Below, in pieces: positions 6,996-36,052 of a DNA stretch of 64,000 bases (the stretch's first letter is position 1; every line of letters begins with the position of its first letter). The notes under the pieces are model-generated. The model was given only the letters and a program-made list of their open reading frames with translations, was not told where the DNA came from and made no database searches. Made by a program: the position numbers and the translations under genes. This stretch comes from Adineta vaga (Eukaryota > Animalia > Rotifera): the NCBI GenBank assembly GCA_021613535.1, contig CP075496.1:10602001-10666000 (forward strand), read 5' to 3'.

Positions 6996-9662
6996 ATGAC
7001 AACAAATTGTCCATCATTTGTTCGACATCAATCACTTGAAGCAACTCAAGTAATTCCATTATTTGATTCAACTACAACAACATTCACATCAACGCCACCA
7101 TTTAAACCGAAAGCTGGCGAAGTTTACGTGATGAAACTCGATATTGGTCATGAAAGTAAGTTTCAATTCCGATGAATACCTTTGTTCATCCGCTCGAGTC
7201 GAAAATTTTTATGAATAAAATCTGGAATCATCTTGGAAACAAAACAAAGGTATATCACGGATAGTTGATTGAGATTTTTGTTTATCATAGATGATTGGCG
7301 CAGTGATGGTTATCGTTGGGTTCAAATAGCTGCACGACGTTTACCAACACATAATCCCGTTATAAAAAAATGTTATTTTCATGCTGGTCAAAAAAATAAG
7401 AAGAAAAGTAAAGATTTTGAAAAGCAAGCATTTGTTTCATTGGTTGATCCGTCCAAAGTTGTTGTACAATATCTTGGTGATGAAAATGTTGCTGAAGAAT
7501 TTCCACATGGTAATTCAAAGAAAAATACTAAACCTTTCTTTCGTACACGTCCATCATTATTAAATAAATTAATATCTGAAGCAGCAACGAACGCAGAAAC
7601 AGCACAAATATTTAAACAATATACTGCAAATAATTCTAATGAACATGATGATGTTGATGAAGATGATGATGATGATGAAGGATCTACAGTTAACAATTCT
7701 ATGGAAGCTGAAGAAACAGTTGATGATACAGATCAAAAGAAATCTTCGATTATTAAAAATGAACCAAAAAAACCGAGAGTTGGTCCTGAAGTTCTCTCTC
7801 AACCACGTAATATTGAACAAATAAGAAATGTTAAACGACGCTTAGCACGTCGTCTCGTTGCATCAGCTGATGAAATCTCTGAATTATATCGTTTTGCACG
7901 TGAAACACCAAATTATATTGTTCGTTTTACATTAATACCAAATATTGTTGCTATTGCTTTTTCCAATGAGTCCATGCATGAATTTAATTTATTATTAGAT
8001 CATCCAGATCTTTTATCTCAACAACAAGTTCTTATAACATTTGATTCAGCATATACAATCAATGCATTTCATGTAACATGTGTGTTTTATCGACATATTG
8101 CAATGAAAGAAGAACCATGTATTTTACTTGGTAAGATTTATTAATTAACAAATTTATGATGGAATTATACATATATATATATATATGCAAAATTTTCTTC
8201 TGTATAGGTTGTGCATTACATAATCGTCGATCAGATGATGTTTATGAATATATTTTAACACATTTAAAACAACAATGTCCAAATATTGAATCACGTTGTT
8301 TATTTATTATTGACAGTGAAGGAAATACATTAAAAAATAATTATTTATCCATCTTTCTTCCACATCTACGTATAATACATACATGGAATTATGTGTTTTC
8401 ACAATTACGTGCGTGGCTATTACAAAATGGTCGAACACAAGCAGATTATCAATTTTATAATGCCGAATTGAAATCGTTATTATTATGTGCTGATATGTTA
8501 ACATTTACACGTTTATACGATCGATGTAAATCGAATTGGACACAAGAATTTCGAACATATTTTGAACAAATTATTTTACCATTAGTAGATACTGATCTCG
8601 GTTCGTGGGTATTGAAAAAATATGATTTATTTGATGCTTATTCAGGAATCAAAGGATTGATTTGTGAACCAATGCAATCTGTGGTATGTCAAATTTAATA
8701 TTTTAGATTCTATTGTTTTTTTCTCTCTTCTCTCTTCTCTTTTAATATAGGCCGCTCAATTACGTGATTGGCGTGAGTCTCGTTTTGACAGCGGTGCCAT
8801 GGCATTTTATTGGTTACAAATGTATTTTGTTCAACAAATACGAAAGTCCTATTCTCGTCTTGGTGGTATCTATACATTAAAACAAGGTATCTATGAAAAA
8901 TGGGCTATGAATGCAGTCACATCGAGTGCGGCACATGAACCCATCAAAGCTTTGATACCAGAAAAAATTGTTGAACATGTTCGAGCCAAAGTGATTATTT
9001 CATCAGTACATCATCCGCATTTACAAGCAAAACGTAGTGGTGAACAACAAATTCTAACATTATCACCTGTGAAAAGACTTAAAACAACTACATTTGATGG
9101 TACACAACATCATCATCATCAACCATGTATTATTGCCACAACAACAACAACACCACATCAAGTTACCACAGCTGATTTGAAAGCAACATTACTTGCTGCT
9201 GCAGCAGCAGCTCAACAACAACCAAGAACAATGACGGTAAGTCACACTCAGTCAAATACAAGAAAAAGAAGATTTTATATCCATTTCCTTTAAATAATTT
9301 AGATCCGCCGAATTGCTGCAACAACTAGTCCACAGCATCAACATCAGCATCAACAGCAACATCAACAGCAACAGACAACATTTCGTCTTACAACTGCGCC
9401 TTCGACATCATCTACTCAACAACCGCAACAGTTTATTATTACAACAGCTGGTACAGCTCTACCATTGACACAAACGACGACTACGACAACAGGATTAGTT
9501 GATGATTCGTCTATGTATGATGATGGTACAGCAGATTTAAGTGGTTGTTTAGTGACGACTTCATCACAAACACAAAATTCAACTACGACACAAACACGCT
9601 CATCATTTGTTCGTCCTTCCCTGCCGACAAATGTTCTTCGATTGACAGTTGTACGCAAATGA
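6996..9662 (+). CDS. MULE/Mutator-like transposase-derived protein with N-terminal CG-1-like DNA-binding region and Q/T-rich tail (5 exons)
   Basis: ATG 6996 is preceded by an in-frame stop. PPFKPKAGEVY...DWRSDGYRW is CG-1-like. LITFDSAY, LFIIDSE, IHTWNY and ICEPMQSV fall at the D, D, CxxH and E positions of MULE-type transposases. GT-AG introns join in phase. Confidence 0.72.
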
Positions 9663-10176
9663 AAACAAAAACAAATGTTCGTTTTCTTTTCGTTTTTCTT
9701 TTCATTGATCATTGCATGTCTGTATCTTGATGTACAGGTTTAAAACACATTCGTCTGTACATAGGATCAGCTTTACTGTTATTGTTTTTTTTTATATATA
9801 TAAATAAGATGAACAACAAAAATTCATCACATTTATATTCAAATTAGACAGATATTTGTGCATATACATATCAATTGATTACGATCTAAGCTACAATTGA
9901 TCACTATGTGATTTGGCTGTATTTATTTCATTTTATTGTATTTAGGAAATCTTATTCTGATCGTGAACTTATGGTAGATAGTGAATGTAGGTTTTTTCTA
10001 TTTCAATATTTGGATTAAACGTGTTAATTTTTTTTGTTTAAAAAAAACACTTTCAGATATTAATTGATTTAATTTTTATAATAATAAATCTTCAACTGTG
10101 AATGCAACACTAGATTTTGTTCATTTGTTGAAAGGAATTTTTGTCGCATTCATTTAGAAAGATTCGGTTAGTCAGA

Positions 10177-11019
10177 TCAAACAGTACAATAACGGTAATC
10201 ACAGGCTGGTGGTTGCGGTAGCTGATAAACATAAAAATCTTGACATTTAGTCACGGATATTAAGCTGCAATCACTACATGTATTGGTTGAATAAAAATAA
10301 CAGACAATACTTGTAGCTGTAGTAAAGATTGCTGTGGGATACTGTCCGGCGAACCATCCGGTAGCAACAGCACCGCAAGAATTTGGAGGTACAGGCGAAT
10401 TTGCTAATAATGTTCCGGCTGGATCTAGAAAACGAATCCATACTGATGTAGTATTAGTAAATGGTGATTTGTTATCACAAGAATTAATCGATTGTGTATA
10501 AGCAACATTACGTGTGTTATCGATAATTTGTGTGTAATTTATACATTGAAGTGGAGTTTCAGTCGAATAGACATAAGTCGTCGTGGGTGATGATGAACAT
10601 TGTAACGGTGTAGTTGTTGCTGAATTAAATAAAAAATCGATTTACATACAAAGAAACTTCTATAAACTCATCATATACATATACCTGAATTGTTCGTTGT
10701 TGTTGTGCTATATGTCGTGGCAGCCACTATAATAATTCCAGAATTTCGAGTATTGGAAACTAATGAATAAATGGCGATGATTAAGCCTGCTATCGATAAT
10801 AGAGCAATAACAGTAAGAATAAGAAATAATGTCATTAAACATGAACGAATGTTGAATTTTGGAAGACTTGATGATATTGTTTCATCAAAAGTATATGGAT
10901 ACCTAAACATAATACGAAAGAGAACATTTCTTTTTCTTTTAAATCTTTACTTACCGGTAATCTGTACGAGATGGTCGTCCATTGTCATCAATATCGATAT
11001 TGATTGTTGAGATAGACAT
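10177..11019 (-). CDS. Type II membrane protein with Thr-rich stalk and C-terminal UMOD/GP2/OIT3-like D8C cysteine domain
   Basis: Exon 1 MSISTINIDIDDNGRPSRTDYR is spliced to a TM-encoding exon. The last exon encodes WIRFLDPAGT...CGAVATGW...VCY...C...VTKCQDFYVYQLPQPPACDYRYCTV*, which matches the D8C pattern. Confidence 0.78.
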
Positions 11020-11806
11020 GGATCCGTATTTCAAATTATAACTTACAATCGATGCCTTCTTTTGCGTAGAGATGACGAGTAAGTCAATTTAGATAGAAAA
11101 ACTAATTGACTACATACATCAATCACAATCCTATCAATAATGTTAACGAATTTTGTATTCTTCACCAGTACTAACTATATTAAAACAGCTTAATTCAAAC
11201 TGAAGTCAAAATGTAAACACTCATGTTGATTTGCTTCAAATGAAATCTCTTCTCGTTTGATTTTGACTATAGTAAGAAACCTATGAAATGAGAGAGATTT
11301 TTATGTTCACGATAAAAGTCATCAATAGTTAAATAAAGCATTCATTACCTTAATAAAATTTCAAGTACAACATGTTACTAACACCGAAAGTATTTATATA
11401 CCTATTTTGAAGCGTCAAGGTTACAATTAATGATTGACTTTTCAGATGCTTCTATATTTACAATAACAATCAGAAGTGTTGATCGACAATCACAATCATC
11501 GAAAAACGCATCTAGTTATTATACGGAAAATATTACCTGTTTTGAGCTAAACAAGGACATATGAGATGTCACATTTGCTTAAAAAAACATTCGTATAATC
11601 TATACAATGCATTCATTCCTTCTGTGAACGATCGTTACTTTTTATAATTATCCATTCAAAATAAGAGAAATATTCATTTGTGATAACTCTAAATCTTTCT
11701 TTCTTTTTTTTCCCTCCTCACGTTTGTGATGTAAAAACAAAACAATTCAATTCAATCAGTGAACAACTCTGCGAAATTATATATTTGATTAAAAGTAAAA
11801 GAACAA

Positions 11807-14800
11807 TTATTCTAAACGTATATTATCAATAGCCCAATTGATATCATTTGTTGCATGTTCAATCTGTGTCCATCGAAATCGTACACCACCAGTCGTTCGT
11901 TTATCATTGATTTCTTTTATTCCTGTTGGTAATGTTACATTCACAGACTGTGCATGTTCTTGATTATACAATGTAATCAAACGTGACCATGATATACCTT
12001 CATCATAAGTCCATTCCAACGCTACTGTTATATTATTTGTTGTTAATACACAATTATCTTCAGTTGTTACATAAAATGCAAAGGAGATCATTCTAATTGA
12101 AAGATAAACATAATGTAAGAATTAAAACTAATTAAATCTGAAAAAAAAACTCACGTTGCTTGACTAATATTCAGTTCACGAGTTATTGCTTCAACATTAC
12201 CACAGCCACAACCGGCACGAAAATGAAGTGCTTGTCCACTTAGATAATTATTGGTATTATTATTATTGAGATTTTCATCACAAATATAACGAATATGTCC
12301 ATTACCACTTAATTTCATCCAATTATTTAGATTAGGTGCATTGATATCAACAACAGTTGAATCATCAAATGTTTCATTAAACCATGTAGGTAATGGTTCT
12401 TTACCCACATATTTTTCGCAATATGTTCCTAATATATGAAGATCGATCTTATAATTCTTAAAGACTTTTTCTTATACCTGAATAATCAATTGCACATTGA
12501 CAACCAGATACAGTACATAAACCTCGATCATGACAGTATTCTGGACATTCACCAACAAATAAACTATTGATTGACCATCGTTCATCTTTGATTTGTGTTC
12601 CAATCCAACGAAATTGTGTCCCACTAAATAGAAAAGTTGATTATTAAGATTTTCTTCATTCTTTTTCTTCTTCCTATAGAGTGCGATAATAGTCATTCGT
12701 TTGTAATTCTCTCACACTATTTCTTCTTCTCCTCCCGGTATCCAAGGCAATATGATTTCTCATGGAGTCACCAAACATGAATAGAATTTCTTATCATTGA
12801 CGCGAGAAAAACAGAACTAGAAAAAAAAACAAATTTCGTCCATTGTTTTTCGATTATTCATGCGTATTTAGAACATCAGCAACGAAGATATGCTAGCAGC
12901 TTCACAAGAAATCGACAATTTTATTGAACGGCAACGTTCTAGATTAAATAAACAACCATCTCAAGTTCCAATGAATCGACCTCCTGCACCTCAGCAACAA
13001 CTACTAAATCAACCACCTCCACGTCAAACTTCATTACCACCAAATAATATTCAAGATCGACTTGACTTCAAAGTAGCACGAATTCTAGATGAACCTCCGC
13101 CTCGTATTCCACCACAACAACAATTTTATCCTCCACCCTCTCAACCACCACCACCATTATCGATGCCTAATAATCAAGTTGTTGAACAACGTCGTTCATC
13201 ATACGATGGTAATGATAATTCAGCAACATTTTTTAAGCGATTCGGAGCATATGACGATAAACGTTCTCAATTGAAAGATGATTTAAAACGTGAATACAAT
13301 GAATATTTACAGAATCAAAGAGGAATGTCGAAAAGTAAATCATCTTCACAATTGTTATCACCACGAAATAATGTAACAAGACATGTTCAATTTCAACAAC
13401 AACAACATCAACAACAGCAACAGAATGGAAAAGTTGTCGCACCATGGGAAAAAAATGAGAATAAATCTCATTCAAATATGCAAAATACGAACAATGTTTC
13501 ATCAACAATGACATCAACAACAACAACAGATTATTCAACAAATCGTTCTCGTGGACAAACATCTGGTAATCATGATGAACAATTTATTCGAGATCGTGAA
13601 GAATATATATTAGAATTACATTCTCAAATACGAGAGTTAGAACAGAGAAGAAAACAACTTGAAACAGGTAAAATATCTTTCATACATTATTCATATTTCT
13701 ATTTTTTTTTTCTCATTATTCAGATGGTGCAAGAGTATCTGCTGGTGGTACGTCCATGGTGTCACGAGCTCATTATACGGAAGATTTAAATGCCTTAAAT
13801 TCTCTACTTGCTGAACGTTTAGATCAACGTAATGCAGTTGATCATGAACTAGCACGTATTCTTAATCGTCCTCCCGTTTCTTCCAGTCCAACACGAGTTA
13901 TGCCAACTGGCACATCAAATCTTAATATATCTCAAGGACATTCTCAACAACAACAAAATGTACGTCAAGTGCAAGCATATCGTCATGAAAATCGATCAGA
14001 TACAAATAATGCAGGATTTCAAATTGGTCGAGAAACGGACAAAGATGAAGAACAAACGGCGAAAAAACGTTATCAACAAGAACTTCAAGCGCAAATGCGT
14101 GAAGCACAAATGCGTAAAGTACAAGCAAAACAAGATAAAGATGACTACGAACGAAAATTAGATGCAGATATTCAACGATATAATTATTTTGGTCGTAGTG
14201 GGGGTGGCGCACCGATGCGAGATAAAGATGGAAATGTTATAGCTAACTTAGCTGACGTTAGAAATCCACCACCACCACCTACACAACGACAGCCTCAACA
14301 ACAACAACAACAACAACAACAACAGCCATATTTTCCACCTGATGATAAAGTCTATTCATTAGGTAATGGTTTAAGTTCTCTTTCAAATCCACCATTTTAT
14401 AGTGGCGAACAATACCAACCACAAAATGCATCAAATTCCGTAAATTGAATTGATAAGCATAGATGTATAGTTTGAATTACTTTTTTCAGGATCGACCAGG
14501 TTCACCAAACCATGCTTGGTGCAGTTAGTAATGGGATTTTCGGTACAGCTAAAACGGAAGCACAAATAGTACGAGAAGAAAAATATAAACAAGATTTAAA
14601 GAGACAAATGGACGAGAAACGTCAACGTGATGTGGAAGAAGCAGCCAGACGGCGCGCTGAAGAAGAACGTGAACTTGCTAAACATTTAGAATGGCAACAG
14701 CAAATGGAAAAGCAAGTGACCGAAGAAGCATTGAGAAAACAAGAAAAAGAAGAACAAGAACGTCTTCATCACCAACAATTACAAGAAGAATTAGAACAAC

Positions 14801-29284: not shown

Positions 29285-29582
29285 TCGATTATTTTATACA
29301 AACAAAACTCTAATTATATAAACTATATTTGATTACTAATAATTTAGATTTTTTAATATAGTACTTTTTTCATTTACTAATTGTAATAATCAAATTTAAC
29401 GTAACTCAAATACGTGTGTTTCTCAAACATCAATTTGTAGATGAAGAGAGAAGAATGTTATTTTGTTCATTTTTCCACATGTAAACTTGTTTTTCCTCAG
29501 AATAACAAAGAGATGTATGTAAAAAAAAGAACACAAAAAAAATTTCAAGACAACACGAAAAATGAGTACTTTATCTCGTCAA

Positions 29583-30514
29583 TTAAGCACTAGTAATTGG
29601 TTTGAATCGTTCAGCACGTTTTGCTTTTTGTTCCTAGAAATATAGAAGTTAAAATAACGAGAAGAAATCAATTGATAATCTACGTACGTTCATCGTATTT
29701 GATTTTGCCACTTGTGATACATCACCAAATCGTTCCGTTCGTTTTTTAATTTCTTCCGTTAAAACTGGAGTTGATGGAGCAGATTTTCCATTGACTTTTT
29801 GCTTTGTCGACTGAAAAATTCATTCGATTTCAATTAGTTATCAAAGATGAGTTTTATCTTACTGTGGATGGTGTAACGACGCCAAAACGATCGATACGTT
29901 TTTGTTTGCTTTCTTCATCCACCACAGGTGAAGGACTATTTGTATGGAAACGTTCACCTCTTTGACGTTTTTTATTTTGTTCATCTTCCTAAATTTATAT
30001 TTCAAATTGAACAAATTTAAAATACTGATATTGAGACTTACTGCTGAAACTGGAGCAGCACCAACCGAATCTTTCTAAACGTCGTTTTTTAGCTGTTTCA
30101 TCAATGGCTTCCTATGAGAACAGAGAAATAGTCTTCGTTTATCTACAAATTGTTGTTTATTTACATGTGGTGTACCAAAACGTAAAGCACGAGAAATTTT
30201 CTTTGCTTCAGGTGCAATTTTTCCAAAACGTTCAAGACGCTGTTGAAATCGCTAGGAAAATAAACGAATCAATCATTCTCTAAGTTTCAGATATAAAACT
30301 TACATCTGCTGCAGCTACTTCTTCGGTTCCATTCTCAGCAGGAATATCACCAGTATCTACTTCGAATTCACTAAAAAAAAAGAAAACAAAAATATAGAAG
30401 TTAATTTTGAATAGACAATCAATTATTATACGTTAGATTCTCTGCAAGTTCTTTTGTATTTTCTGCAGGATCGACTGTTAATCCTGTACCAGCAATTTCA
30501 GTAGTAGAAGCCAT
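29583..30514 (-). CDS. SARNP/CIP29/Tho1/MOS11-like mRNA export factor, without SAP domain; apparent 1-nt frameshift near 30063
   Basis: Seven short exons with repeated R-x-x-RF(G) motifs (RLERFG, RALRFG, RGERF, RIDRFG, RTERFG, RAERF) typical of the Tho1/MOS11 C-terminal region. Confidence 0.75.
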
Positions 30515-30716
30515 TTTAGAAAATATTTCAGTAGTACTACCAATAGATTGTAATGGAAGGGTGTGGAAAGAAAGACATGCATCATACTGTCAATGCGCAC
30601 CAATGAGAAAATTCGATGGTAAATAATGATTCGTTTATTATTAACCAATTAGTTATCGAGAAAACTTTGATGAGGAAGAGGAAGAACAGTTTGGTATATT
30701 TTACATAACTTCAAAA
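30515..30716. promoter_or_regulatory. ~200 nt bidirectional promoter with three CCAAT boxes
   Basis: Divergent ATGs at 30514 (-) and 30717 (+). CCAAT occurs at ~30540, ~30600 and ~30645. Confidence 0.6.
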
Positions 30717-31265
30717 ATGAAAAAACGACATAAATCTAAAGCAGTTCAATTAGCAGCAGAACGTGATATTGAACTCTACGTTCGACTGTAAGTGTATTTA
30801 ATATTTAAATACAAAAATAGTTTATTTTATAATCGAATTCTAGAGAATTTGATGATCAAATTGTTGTTGAAGAATATCTTCTACGAAATGCAATTGAACG
30901 ATCAATTAATACACTTTTCGGCGAAGTAAGATTCTTTGTTAGTTTCATTATGTATCACAATTTGTTTCTTTCTCAGATCGGTAGTCAATCGATTAATGTA
31001 GAAATTGTATCATATCGATATGGAACAGCAACGATTCGTACCAAAGTCAAGTAGATTGATCAATAAGATTTTCTTCTATCGAAAGAAAAATAAATGATTT
31101 TTATATTATAGAATGATGAATCAACTTCGTTGTGCATTAGCATTTTATGGAATGCATGAAAAACGTGAATGTGCTTTTCGTGTTGATTTGAAATCAGAAG
31201 AAAATAATGATGATAAAGATGATGATGATGATAATGAGAGATCACTGGAAATGTCAATGGATTAA
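30717..31265 (+). CDS. Rpp14/Pop5-family RNase P/MRP subunit-like protein (4 exons)
   Basis: Spliced product has LYVRLEF...LRNAIERSINTLFGEIGS...VEIV...ATIR...LRCALAF...FRV, the Rpp14/Pop5 pattern, plus an acidic tail. Confidence 0.7.
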
Positions 31266-31303
31266 TTCATTTCTTTTTGTTTTTGTTATTTCAGATAAAT
31301 GCC

Positions 31304-32771
31304 ATGTGGAAACATTTTAAATTCGATCCTCATTCAATTAATTTATCGTGTCACACAGATGTGAAATTCAATGAAGTAATAGCATCTCATATAACGAATC
31401 CATCGATCTTTAATCTTACTTTCTAAATAGTTCGATCAATTATTACGAACAGAATGGGATCGTGCTTCAACTCAAGGTTTATTTACATTTGAAATCGGTG
31501 ATCAAATTAAACAACGTGTACTTGATGGTGATCTTCATTATATAGTCGAAGTAATTTCTTTTATTTATTGTTTTGTAAGATAAAATATTCTCGATCATTT
31601 CATTTGTCTATATAGTTAAATCCAAGTCGATATGAAAAACGTCGAATGCCATATGCATTTGAAAATGTGAATACACCATTTGATAGAAATAAATTTAATT
31701 TTAATAAAATCAAAGACGGAGAGGTAAATCGAAAGATATAACAATAACTTGTGGTTATAAATAGATAGATATATACTATTGATTTTTAGATTCTGTTTTC
31801 TTTAGATGATGAACAACAAACTGATAAACATTTAGTTATCATTAATAATTCACCTATTCGTTCTTATCATGTATTACTTGTAGTAGATCGTCAACGTGAA
31901 CAAATACAAGTAATAAATAGATAATTGCTGATGAAAATAAAACAACTATATTGTTTTGTTTAATTAATGAACAGATTTTAACAGTTGATAGTATCTTATT
32001 TGGACTTCGCTTTGTTGCATCAAGTGCTCATCCATTTCTCTACGCTGGTTTCAATTCTCTCTGTGGTTATGCATCAATTAATCATGTAAAAATTGATTCA
32101 ATTTCGAAATAGAACTATATATTTGGTCGTCATTTAGCTTCATCTTCATGGAATATATATGCCAGATCGTTTATTTCTTCAAACAATTGTAAATATGATT
32201 CATTCGATATACTATCCTCTTATAAATATAGTTTTAGAAATGTTCACTATTTCATTCGAAATCAAATTGTTATCTACATGATGTGTTCGATACACAAGCA
32301 TTTGCATTTGAAATCAAACATATTAGTGAACTCGATAGAATCGCTCGGTAAGAATTTTCATGTTGCATATCTAATCAAAGTTAAATATGTAGGTATATTC
32401 ATACCGTAACAACTTATTTTGCTTCATCGAGCATTGCACATAATCTATCGATTGTTAAAGGTGATTCATTTTCCGATGGATCACAACCAGCATTACGAAT
32501 TTTTATCTGGTTTCGTCAACCAAATATCGGAGTGAAATCAGTCGATCGATGTAATCTTGCTTGTCTGGAAATGTCAGGTTATGTCTTTCTTCGATGTAAG
32601 TTAAATGTCTACCAGATGAAATCATTTCAAGAATTTTATTTAGATGAAAACGTGTTTGATGATATAACTGAAACGGAATTACGTCAAAGTATTAATGCAT
32701 TGGCTTTATCATTAGAAGAACAACAAAAAATTAAAAACGATATTAAAACGCTATTAGATCAAGAAAAATAA
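31304..32771 (+). CDS. GDPGP1: GDP-D-glucose phosphorylase (GDPGP1/VTC2 HIT family), ~9 exons
   Basis: FDQLLRTEWDRA..QGLF, LNPSR, PFDRNKFNFNKI, IINNSPI, GFNSLCGYASINHLHLHG (HIT motif), NLACLEMSG. Confidence 0.9.
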
Positions 32772-32927
32772 ATACATATCGATTATTACTCAAGTAAATC
32801 TCGATTTTTGATAAAAAAGAAAAGGTGATCTTCAGTGAATGTTTAATTCCATTTTATGATAGTATCTGATGTTTATTTTTTTGCAAAAAACAAAAAAGAA
32901 ATAAAGTTTTCTATTTTTTTTTCAGAT

Positions 32928-33647
32928 ATGCTTTCATCATTTATTCTTCGTCGTTTGACATCACTTACACAACCACATTTCTATTCATTTTCCACTTCCG
33001 TTGTTCTTGGAAAAGGAAAAGATGCCGGTGGTGGACAATCAAAAGGAACAAAACGTGTTCTATCTGATTCTGACTTAGCTGCCTCATCAAACGATTGGTC
33101 AGCATTAAAAACTCAATATGATAAATTATTAGTTGAACTTCATGAACTTTATTCAAAACAAATTCAATTGCGAACATCATCGTTAGCATTCGAAGAATTA
33201 TCTGTTACTCTTCCACCGAATAAGAAAAGTCATCAATTGAAAGAATTAACACAAATTATTCAAAAATCACCTCAAATGTTTATGATCGACATGGCACGTC
33301 ATGCTCAATATATTCCCAATGTTCTTGAAGCTATTCAAAAATCTGGTCTCAATGTTAATCCTCAACAAGATGGTACAACACTTTATTTACCTACACCAAA
33401 AGTAACTCGTGAACATCGTGAGGAATTAGCTAAAAATGCAAAGAAATTAGCCGATCAAATCATTGTCAAAATGCGTGAAGCTTATTCAAAAGCACATCGA
33501 AATATAAAAAAACAAGAGAAAACTTTAAGTCGAGATTTAGTTGCTGATTTAGATACAAATTTAAAACGTCGACTTGATGGCTACATTACACAAGTAGAAA
33601 AAATTCGAGCAGAAAAACAAAAAGAATTGTTAAATTCAACATTTTGA
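32928..33647 (+). CDS. MRRF: Mitochondrial ribosome recycling factor (intronless)
   Basis: Ser/Arg-rich presequence-like N-terminus; AIQKSGLNVNPQQDGT...PKVTREHREELAKNAK and KQKELL are RRF signatures. Confidence 0.92.
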   Translation: MLSSFILRRLTSLTQPHFYSFSTSVVLGKGKDAGGGQSKGTKRVLSDSDLAASSNDWSALKTQYDKLLVELHELYSKQIQLRTSSLAFEELSVTLPPNKKSHQLKELTQIIQKSPQMFMIDMARHAQYIPNVLEAIQKSGLNVNPQQDGTTLYLPTPKVTREHREELAKNAKKLADQIIVKMREAYSKAHRNIKKQEKTLSRDLVADLDTNLKRRLDGYITQVEKIRAEKQKELLNSTF

Positions 33648-34296
33648 ATTTATTGAATAAAGTTCTAGTATTAAATACTCATAGTTATTTATGTTAGCTT
33701 TGAAATATTTCAAAAAGATTTCGTTGTATTTGCATATTATTTTGTTGAAAGAAGACATGTGATGTTTTTTTGTTCGATAAATGTTAATGGGTGACAAACT
33801 GATCTATTTAACCTATAAAAATGACGTATTTTATTAAAATAGATAGAACGATTTTACAGGATTCAAAAGTGAGCAATGGATAGTTCTCAGTGTTGAGAGC
33901 ACAGATATTGCATACTATTCTAACAATGCTTTATCGGCATCAGCAATCATTTTTTTTCTTCCTACAAAGACAAATTCGCTCGTTTAAACCATCTTACAAC
34001 TCTTACATAAATCTACTATCTAAAAGTTTAGATTTCATATCTTTGTTCTCTTTTGTTGTCTATGCTATATCGAATACTTTAACAAGCCCAGAAAAACAAC
34101 TGAATCTTTTCATGTTATCTTGTCTTCTCTTTTTCTTCAAACATCAACGACGAGACAAAGGATAATATATAAAACAATAACATTCGTTAATCCATCGTTA
34201 GAAATCAATTGTGTATCGTCTCGCAATAGATTAATTGTATGTGAATACTATTATCTATCATTACAATTCTACTGTTGAAGAAAGAAAAATTTCATT

Positions 34297-36052
34297 ATGA
34301 CATCAGTTATTTCCGATATTGAACTTAAATCTCAACTGGATCGAACTATAATTGATAATAAGATAACAAATGGATCAGCAGCAAAGAAAAGATTTCGCTT
34401 TCATACTTACAAAAATTTACTTATTCTTTGTCTGGCATTTCTTCTTCAATTTACTGCATTTGGAGCAATGGGTAATTTACAAAGTTCATTAAATACTGAA
34501 GCAAATGTTGGTGTGAATTCTCTCTCTATTATTTATGCTTGTTTGGTTTTTTCATCTATCTTTTTACCGCATCCTTTAATAGCTATACTCGGTCTAAAAT
34601 GGACTCTTGTCCTCTGCCAAATACCGTATGTATTATGGGAAATTGATTGATTTGATGGTAAACATTTTGTTTTCAGTTATCTTTTATATATTGCAGCGAA
34701 TTACTATCCAAAAGCATATCTTATGTATCCAGGTACAAGATAATTATCGATGGATTTTCTATGCATCGTTTTGTTTCTATTTAGCTGCAGCATTGGTTGG
34801 ATTAGCTGCTGCACCATTATGGACATCCAAGTGTAGTTATTTAACTGAGACAGGTGCAATCTATGCAGACATGAAACATGTTCATAAAGACGTGATTGTA
34901 AATCGATTTTTTGGTCTCTTCTTCATGTTCTTTCAATCAAGTAAGTTGTCTTTGGGTATCTTCTTTTTTTTTCATGTCAATTCTATTTCTTAAGGTCAAG
35001 TTTGGGGAAATTTAATTTCGTATCTTGTTCTTAAACCAAAGGAAAAAGAAAATAATGAAACATTATCTATGGACGTAAAAATCTATGATAAATGTGGAGC
35101 AGATTTTAGTGAAAAAGAATATAGAGGTGCTGAAGTTATCAATCAAATTGACCGAAAGACAGTAAGAATTGAACTATGTGATTCTTTTCTCTGTTTGTTT
35201 GCATTTTAGATTGATATTCTTTGTATTATTTACATTTGTATTTGTATTTGTTCGATATTGATTGTAATTATATTCCTTAATCAACGTCGCAAAACATCAC
35301 GAAGTAAAATTATAGATTTCAAAAATATCATGACAAGAATATCGATCATTTAGATAAAGTTTCTGTAATGCTTTGTGATTCAATTCGTTTATTGATTTCA
35401 ACGATACGACAAATGAAAAATATTAATCAATTGTTACTTATACCATTAACTATTTGGTCGGGTCTAGAACAATCCTTTCTTAGTGCACAATTTACTAAAG
35501 TAATTTTCATTTTTTATCGATAAAATAACATTGAATTGATGAGAATTTTTCTATTAGGGTTTTGTTTCTTGTACATTGAATGCTAAATACGTTGGACTTG
35601 TATTAATTGCTTATGGTATTTGTGATTCAATTGGTAGTCTTAGTTTTGGTCAAATAGTTAAATATTTCGGTCGATGGCCATGTTTTGTTCTTGCTGCAAT
35701 TATAAATTATTCTCTAATAATCACAATGTTTATATGGAAACCAAGTGAAAATACAATTGCTATTCTATTTGTTCTTGCTGGTTTATGGGGTTTATCAGAT
35801 GCTGTATGGCAAACACAAATAAATGCATTTTATGGTGTTTTATTTGTTGAAAATAGTGAAGCTGCTTTTTCGAATTATCGCCTATGGGAATCGATAGGTT
35901 TCGTTTTATTCTATATTATTACACCTTATATTCGTATACGAATAGCATTGATTATTTTATTGATCTTTTTATCATTGGGAATGTTTGGTTATGGTTTAAC
36001 TGAATATCGTTGGAAGATGAATGCAAAAAAAGTTCAAGCTATTTCATCATAA
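34297..36052 (+). CDS. UNC-93-like MFS membrane protein (UNC93A family)
   Basis: AFLLQFTAF...NLQSSLN, AAPLWTSKCSYLT, FFGLFFMFFQSSQVWGNLIS, DAVWQTQINAFYG, AAFSNYRLWESIGF. Confidence 0.93.

Follow-up and report, generated by a model that had tools for sequence, protein, structure and literature searches.

The window analysed here is a 64,000-nucleotide stretch of the Adineta vaga genome (contig CP075496.1, positions 10,602,001 to 10,666,000, forward strand), which is AT-rich with about 30% GC and has short GT..AG introns. Three head-to-tail genes of unrelated housekeeping functions lie on the + strand at positions 30717-33647 of the window, in the order Rpp14/Pop5-like gene (G1), GDPGP1-like gene (GDP-D-glucose phosphorylase 1-like, G2) and mitochondrial ribosome recycling factor gene (MRRF/RRF, G3). 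Our results indicate that the trio is probably one RNA polymerase II transcription unit, i.e., a three-gene spliced-leader operon, a reading that is well supported but unproven; the co-transcription of the three genes from a single promoter and start site is what we infer. The initial annotation of this DNA had proposed an operon resolved by spliced-leader trans-splicing, and this proposal stood in so far as the leader was found at 32926, RNA was found over both gaps and the poly(A) site of G1 was found at the acceptor of G2, while the leader at 31295 did not appear in any of four RNA runs. The parts of the proposed unit are as follows (UTR, untranslated region; CDS, coding sequence; aa, amino acids).

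30562-30708, no strand: shared bidirectional promoter region, between a minus-strand Tho1/MOS11-like gene (ATG 30514) and G1
30717-31265, + strand: G1, Rpp14/Pop5-like, 126 aa, 4 exons; ATG 30717, TAA 31263-31265
30717-30787, 30844-30925, 30977-31050, 31112-31265, + strand: exons of G1, open frame across GT..AG introns
31266-31299, + strand: 3' UTR of G1, which is also the polypyrimidine tract and acceptor of G2; tail after 31296-31299, no AATAAA
31304-32771, + strand: G2, GDPGP1-like, 340 aa, nine exons; TAA 32769-32771
31304-31375, 31431-31550, 31616-31723, 31790-31909, 31975-32085, + strand: exons 1-5 of G2
32138-32188, 32238-32347, 32393-32595, 32644-32771, + strand: exons 6-9 of G2
32772-32925, + strand: 3' UTR of G2 and intercistronic stretch, with cryptic GT donors at 32825 and 32862, AATAAA at 32900-32905, a T-rich tract and AG at 32924-32925
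32928-33647, + strand: CDS of G3, mitochondrial ribosome recycling factor, 239 aa, single exon; mRNA body 32926-33647
33656-33661, + strand: terminal AATAAA of the proposed unit

RNA across the gene boundaries

The RNA data were Logan contigs of four public runs from four studies (X1, X5, X14 and X6), which were placed on 30100-34700. The run type is recorded only as 'RNA? (a guess)', and the contigs were assembled from 31-letter words, so that they show RNA over each boundary rather than the identity or the ends of molecules. The contigs contained each of the eleven cis introns predicted for G1 and G2 as a GT..AG joint (all three exon joints of G1 and all eight of G2), which shows that the contigs are spliced RNAs. 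RNA depth fell to zero over 33796-34103 in each of the four runs and over 30562-30715 in three of them, and these silent stretches argue against genomic DNA in the libraries. They also mark the limits of the unit on either side; between them RNA extended from about 30709 to just beyond 33650, with no silent gap ahead of G2 or G3. The next gene downstream, which is UNC-93-like, has RNA from about 34114, past the silent 33796-34103, and is separately started.

The 3' end of G1 was seen in an X5 contig covering 31112-31299, which ends in 14 untemplated A. As the genome reads AG-AT-AAA-T at 31293-31300, the tail of G1 starts after 31296-31299, i.e., 2-5 nt beyond the AG of the G2 acceptor. A hexamer scan found no AATAAA upstream of this poly(A) site, including the nearest 40 nt, and the only related hexamer was GATAAA, at the cleavage site itself. 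G1 and G2 as one fused gene was rejected, because a stop codon and a poly(A) tail lie between them.

RNA over the same boundary was seen in an X1 contig of 1936 nt, which is unbroken from 31244 to 31375, a stretch that takes in the final 22 nt of the G1 CDS with its stop codon, the entire gap and exon 1 of G2. This contig has 31 letters or more to either side of the boundary and goes on through the spliced exons of G2 into G3. The GAT/GAC-rich repeat at 31201-31243, which encodes the acidic tail of the Rpp14-like protein, was skipped when the contigs were placed and hides the true start of this contig. It could be argued that such boundary contigs derive from genomic DNA or are assembly chimeras, and that the nine loose letters described below at the G3 acceptor match the leader by chance. 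The guessed run types leave room for this, and a contig over two genes proves no single transcript. But no intron-retaining path was reported, and the silent intergenic stretch had zero depth in 4/4 runs. Furthermore, the overlap of a trans-spliced G2 mRNA with the mRNA of G1 would be 5 nt at most, so that a 31-mer assembler, which needs 30 nt for joining, could not have joined the two, and the probability of an exact 9-nt match is about 4e-6 per site. An artefact of this kind is very hard to credit. The contigs, as distinct from single molecules, demonstrate that RNA really crosses the G1/G2 boundary.

Intergenic gaps and acceptors

Both gaps end in a pyrimidine-rich acceptor 2-9 nt ahead of the downstream ATG. 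The G1-G2 gap of 38 nt (31266-31303) consists nearly entirely of T and C and ends in TTTCAG, with the AG at 31293-31294, and the G2-G3 gap of 156 nt carries the AATAAA at 32900-32905, then a T-rich run, CAG (AG at 32924-32925), AT and the ATG at 32928. The coordinates given in the initial annotation (gaps of 38 and 156 nt, TTTCAG to 31294, AATAAA at 32900 and the T run, CAG, AT and ATG at 32915-32930) were all correct. In the 23 nt before the AG, the pyrimidine content was 87% at the G2 acceptor and 74% at the G3 acceptor, as compared to a mean of 60% at the eleven cis-intron acceptors of G1 and G2. Only 9 of the 2798 + strand AG sites of the 64-kb window, the G2 acceptor included, reached at least 87% pyrimidine in the preceding 23 nt. 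The chance of such an acceptor lying within 10 nt upstream of a given ATG was about 0.0014 for G2 (at least 87%) and about 0.015 for G3 (at least 74%). The remaining + strand AG sites with at least 87% pyrimidine are at 8750, 12679, 13723, 48368, 50599, 52745, 57814 and 61674, and by their composition these eight may be further trans-splice acceptors.

Spliced leader and cis-splicing at the MRRF acceptor

Rotifers have been known since 2005 to carry out spliced-leader trans-splicing. An X14 contig covering 32924-33650 is preceded by the loose letters CTTACCAAG, which together with the AG at 32924-32925 give CTTACCAAGAG. The consensus rotifer leader is 23 nt long and ends in CTTACCAAGAG (PMC3795323, Table 1); the loose letters and the genomic AG are the last 11 nt of this leader, joined at 32926. 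Our results showed that the spliced leader is added exactly at 32926, 2 nt ahead of the MRRF ATG, and of the two leader-tagged ends that had been predicted, at 31295 and 32926, it was the latter that was found (in X14).

The source of the leader was also located. When all six contigs of the assembly (100.8 Mb) were scanned, the leader end followed by GT was found in 54 copies, as compared to 0-2 for the control. Most of these copies are in head-to-head (divergent) pairs 168 bp apart, each copy is preceded by the rest of the leader, and clusters lie at two places:

C5:9.88-9.93 Mb: cluster of leader copies
C5:10.91-10.93 Mb: cluster of leader copies

Judged by this arrangement, the 54 leader-end copies are spliced-leader RNA genes. 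Variant leader exons are present in a few copies, e.g., with A for C at one position.

The MRRF acceptor was also used in cis. In X1 the 3' UTR of GDPGP1 is joined to this acceptor at 32861>32926 with the donor GTATCT, and in X5 a joint at about 32824>32926 uses the donor GTGATC. The X5 joint was reported raw as 32817>32924 with GAAA between, and was re-read via a one-A deletion at 32813, which was reported in X1 and X6 and not in X5, its presence in X5 being deduced from the letters of the joint. The cryptic GT donors at 32825 and 32862 are cis-spliced to the MRRF acceptor in two studies, hence RNA is continuous over the second gap, and such splicing gives dicistronic RNAs, seen here as contig joints. 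Cis- and trans-splicing seem to compete at this acceptor.

One might then suppose that MRRF is made mainly from cis-spliced messages, either as a dicistronic GDPGP1-MRRF mRNA with reinitiation or from a private 5' exon in the 3' UTR of GDPGP1, and that the leader form is minor. The two cis joints indeed dominate the assembled path in their runs, but the donors are weak and differ from run to run, a pattern that suits cryptic sites better than a fixed 5' exon, and X14 has the leader at the same acceptor. Moreover, assemblers prefer a longer path to a 23-nt tip, therefore the dominance in contigs says nothing on abundance. We consider this supposition improbable. Use of the acceptors only in cis, which the initial annotation had set against an operon, was not what we found at MRRF, where the leader occurs along with the cis joints. 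The cis use of the MRRF acceptor from GDPGP1 3' UTR donors had not been foreseen, nor had the upstream ATG of G2 that is described below.

Promoter region and stand-alone relatives

The promoter region ahead of G1 has CCAAT boxes at 30600 and 30645, and a third box lies at 30540. Those at 30600 and 30645 are both kept in Adineta ricciae and Adineta steineri, and one of the two is kept in Rotaria socialis. RNA depth was zero in this region in three of the four runs, and both flanks were covered. As had been proposed for the only CCAAT-rich promoter, the sole RNA-silent, CCAAT-bearing promoter region of the trio is the one upstream of G1. No CCAAT box was found in either gap or inside G1, and a lone ATTGG near G3 sits in the coding sequence of G2 and is not conserved.

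Relatives of G2 and G3 that stand alone served as controls. A GDPGP1 paralogue is located on chromosome C1 as follows.

About C1:3591931-3593403 (within C1:3586000-3595999), - strand: GDPGP1 paralogue, full length, about 50-70% aa identity per exon

Two CCAAT boxes lie no more than about 110 nt from the ATG of this paralogue, and the apparently stand-alone MRRF of Didymodactylos carnosus has one at about -110. The lack of CCAAT boxes at G2 and G3, as compared to their presence at the stand-alone relatives, is indirect evidence for one promoter upstream of G1. The C1 paralogue is followed after about 400 nt by an UNC-93 paralogue, and no Rpp14 or RRF copy is present there; the C1 locus looks like a duplicated counterpart of the window region after the loss of two of the three genes.

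Conservation in other bdelloids

Conservation of the gene order in other rotifers, a check named in the initial annotation, was confirmed: the order Rpp14-like, GDPGP1 and RRF is kept in A. ricciae, A. steineri and R. socialis, with the following gaps.

A. ricciae: G1-G2 gap 47 nt, G2-G3 gap 96 nt
A. steineri: G1-G2 gap 29 nt, G2-G3 gap 85 nt
R. socialis: G1-G2 gap 35 nt, G2-G3 gap 193 nt

In all four species the first gap is composed of a pyrimidine tract, AG, ATA, a few bases and the ATG, with no AATAAA. GDPGP1 followed by RRF was found in five further bdelloid genomic contigs, where the G2-G3 gaps end in YAG, AT(A) and ATG, usually with an AATAAA 20-70 nt ahead of the acceptor. Seven other bdelloid loci have the same layout between G2 and G3. 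The trio is intact in A. steineri even though its downstream neighbour is a different one. The gene after MRRF in that species is a large minus-strand SecA/helicase-like gene and not UNC-93, i.e., a synteny break (contig 7820-12720).

Operon or independently transcribed genes

The three genes might instead be packed and independently transcribed, with the promoters of GDPGP1 and MRRF located inside the upstream genes. The leader would then only trim 5' ends, and the RNA at the boundaries would be outron or read-through. Hybrid operons with internal promoters exist in C. elegans. This explanation also gains from the contigs, which cannot reveal the ends of molecules, and from the MRRF of D. carnosus, which is apparently alone and yet has an acceptor directly before its ATG. 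Leader addition on single rotifer genes is well known, too (PMC3795323). On the other hand, the G1 mRNA ends 2-5 nt past the G2 acceptor, so that a promoter of G2 must sit inside the 549-bp G1, where no CCAAT box of the kind found at the first position is present; the second gap has none either. There is no RNA-silent gap ahead of G2 or G3, and first gaps of 29-47 nt are kept in four species. Independent transcription of the three genes is, in our opinion, unlikely, although it is the alternative to be taken most seriously.

Several results weigh against the operon. The contigs of four runs contained no leader at 31295, the acceptor of G2, which is a weak negative because assemblers clip short leader tips, and no poly(A) site of G2 was seen in the same contigs. 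Since the leader is common on single bdelloid genes, its presence on G3 is necessary, not sufficient, for an operon. Contigs of 31-letter words go no further than the boundaries, so that the carriage of the three genes on a single molecule, or a start at the G1 promoter, is beyond what they can show. As to synteny, the neighbours adh_short, Tho1/MOS11-like, UNC-93 and DHO_dh are likewise collinear between Adineta and Rotaria; with non-operon neighbours also collinear, the synteny signal is for the most part not peculiar to the trio. In a short contig of D. carnosus, no GDPGP1 was found in the 688 nt upstream of MRRF. Finally, an out-of-frame ATG lies at 31299-31301, 5 nt upstream of the G2 ATG and past the G2 acceptor, and in a G2 mRNA formed by trans-splicing at 31295 it would be the first AUG.

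This 31299 ATG opens an overlapping frame of 21 codons and is not present in A. ricciae, A. steineri or R. socialis. The MRRF gene of D. carnosus contains introns, as compared to the single exon in Adineta and Rotaria, and its acceptor lies directly ahead of the ATG.

Leader-bearing messages of G2 and G3 were also sought in other data. A first pattern scan of metagenomes for a leader-GDPGP1 junction gave no match. A second scan gave 55 contigs, nearly all of them long metagenome contigs (the readable labels were human-gut) with the same 15-nt spacing; they were taken as a chance match to a gut bacterium and set aside, and the 80 bases around the match in one of the 55 contained nothing rotifer-like. 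A 247-aa relative was tried as a carrier of a translated leader and was rejected, as its N-terminus does not match. Logan contigs with MRRF relatives, in which leader-bearing or dicistronic transcripts of other species were sought, were all intron-containing or uninformative genomic DNA among those fetched. The contigs of one relative with 40% identity, from an unidentified non-bdelloid, had no GDPGP1 upstream and no leader.

Proposed mechanism

In the operon that we propose, the conserved CCAAT-bearing bidirectional promoter at about 30560-30710 would drive the whole unit, which would end at the AATAAA at 33656, and the primary transcript would be cut into three mRNAs by polyadenylation and spliced-leader addition. 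At the G1/G2 boundary two fates would be open to a transcript. Cleavage and polyadenylation 2-5 nt beyond the acceptor AG would give the G1 mRNA, of which the 3' end was observed, or the 23-nt leader would be added at 31295 to give a capped G2 mRNA. There is no intercistronic DNA at this boundary, and on any one molecule either fate would rule out the other. At the G2/G3 boundary, the AATAAA 19 nt before the G3 acceptor presumably directs the formation of the G2 3' end near 32920, and the addition of the leader at 32926, where the joint was observed, would give the G3 mRNA. A minor fraction of the transcripts would be cis-spliced from the weak donors at 32825 or 32862 to 32926, resulting in the dicistronic RNAs whose joints were observed in contigs.

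Comparison with known operons

In the operons of Ciona the poly(A) site lies right at the acceptor, AATAAA is absent from most of them, and a given transcript is believed to yield only one of the two mRNAs (PMC1488885, Satou et al. 2006). The G1/G2 boundary is similar to those Ciona intestinalis operons that have no intercistronic DNA, in that a poly(A) site lies at the downstream acceptor and no AATAAA is found within 40 nt upstream. The members are unrelated housekeeping genes in both, and the mRNAs are expected to be mutually exclusive for each transcript. The use of one leader for single genes and operons in Ciona is consistent with our data, in which only the known rotifer leader was seen. 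The cleavage here, however, occurs 2-5 nt past the AG and not directly at it, so that a slight overlap of the mRNAs is expected. Other differences from Ciona are the phylum, the unrelated leader, the leader on G2, which was not observed here, and the canonical AATAAA at G2/G3, where the Ciona pattern of no AATAAA within 40 nt upstream does not hold.

Similarities between the G2/G3 boundary and the SL1-type operons of C. elegans (PMC1488885) are little or no intercistronic sequence, a general leader and a canonical AATAAA in the upstream cistron. Mutually exclusive outcomes on each molecule have been proposed for that type as for Ciona, and a further feature of G2/G3 beside it is the cis-splicing from 3' UTR donors to the acceptor. 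Overall, the Ciona type best fits the G1/G2 boundary, and the SL1 type of C. elegans best fits G2/G3. The SL2-type operons of C. elegans are alike in having same-strand housekeeping genes under one upstream promoter and trans-spliced downstream genes, but the trio lacks an intercistronic region of about 100 nt, and nothing points to a second, specialised leader.

Chaetognaths, which were studied alongside rotifers among the gnathiferans, have operons defined as genes on one strand that are separated by less than 250 bp and of which at least one bears the leader; these operons are enriched in housekeeping genes and have no operon-specific leader (PMC12460157, Nature 2025). The trio falls within this operational definition, with same-strand gaps of 38 and 156 nt here and of 29-47 and 85-193 nt in the other species, all under about 250 nt, and its leader sequence differs from that of chaetognaths. 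The same paper names rotifers loosely among the lineages with 'trans-splicing and operonic transcription' and gives no rotifer operon data (PMC12460157), and operons have been described as not reported in rotifers (PMC7986045). Our literature search found no published report of such an operon layout in rotifers.

Few animal groups have polycistronic transcription, and a documented rotifer operon would bring in a further phylum. It would also be relevant to the question of whether the evolution of leader trans-splicing is always followed by that of operons. The layout in which a poly(A) site falls on the acceptor and AATAAA is missing would offer a third, independent lineage, beside Ciona and the C. 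elegans SL1 type, for studying how 3'-end formation and trans-splicing are coupled. Bdelloids may have a widespread and conserved Ciona-type operon system, in which upstream 3' ends are formed at the trans-splice acceptor without a canonical poly(A) signal and each primary transcript gives either the upstream or the downstream mRNA; we put the chances of this broader claim at even. If true, this would be the first operon system known from Rotifera and an independent origin of intercistron-less operons beside those of tunicates and nematodes, with the trio as one clean example. Gene models and promoter assignments in bdelloids should allow for operons.

Identity of the genes and other observations

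An Rfam search of 29500-35000 gave no match to any RNA family. Each of the four runs had a contig that matched just the 33 nt at 33739-33771 (90-95% alike) and had unrelated flanks. This piece was set aside; it has no splice-site boundaries on either strand and is probably a short similarity to another transcript.

Pfam searches with single exons of G1 and G2 (24-67 aa each) gave no match, as the exons are too short to score, and the two genes were named from their collinear orthologues, which show 72-83% DNA identity to the window (72-76% for those of G2). PF01900 (RNase_P_Rpp14) is found in the A. ricciae orthologue of G1, and its match is marked as weak in A. steineri and R. socialis. PF26217 and PF26216 (GDPGP1_N/C) are both found in the G2 orthologues of A. 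ricciae, A. steineri and R. socialis. Judged by these orthologues, G1 would encode an RNase P/MRP subunit of the Rpp14/Pop5 family (Rpp14 or Pop5), and G2 would be GDPGP1-like. The HLHLH histidine motif is present in the spliced translation of G2, across the junction of exons 5 and 6.

G3 matches Pfam RRF (PF01765) over residues 77-235 of 239 with E = 3.4e-30, and by this homology it is a mitochondrial RRF with an N-terminal extension. Its nearest named relatives are the annotated mitochondrial RRFs of A. ricciae (88% identity), R. socialis and A. steineri, which identifies the source organism as a bdelloid rotifer of the genus Adineta. A look-up for sequences identical to the MRRF of the window returned nothing. 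MRRF is present in one copy in the A. vaga genome.

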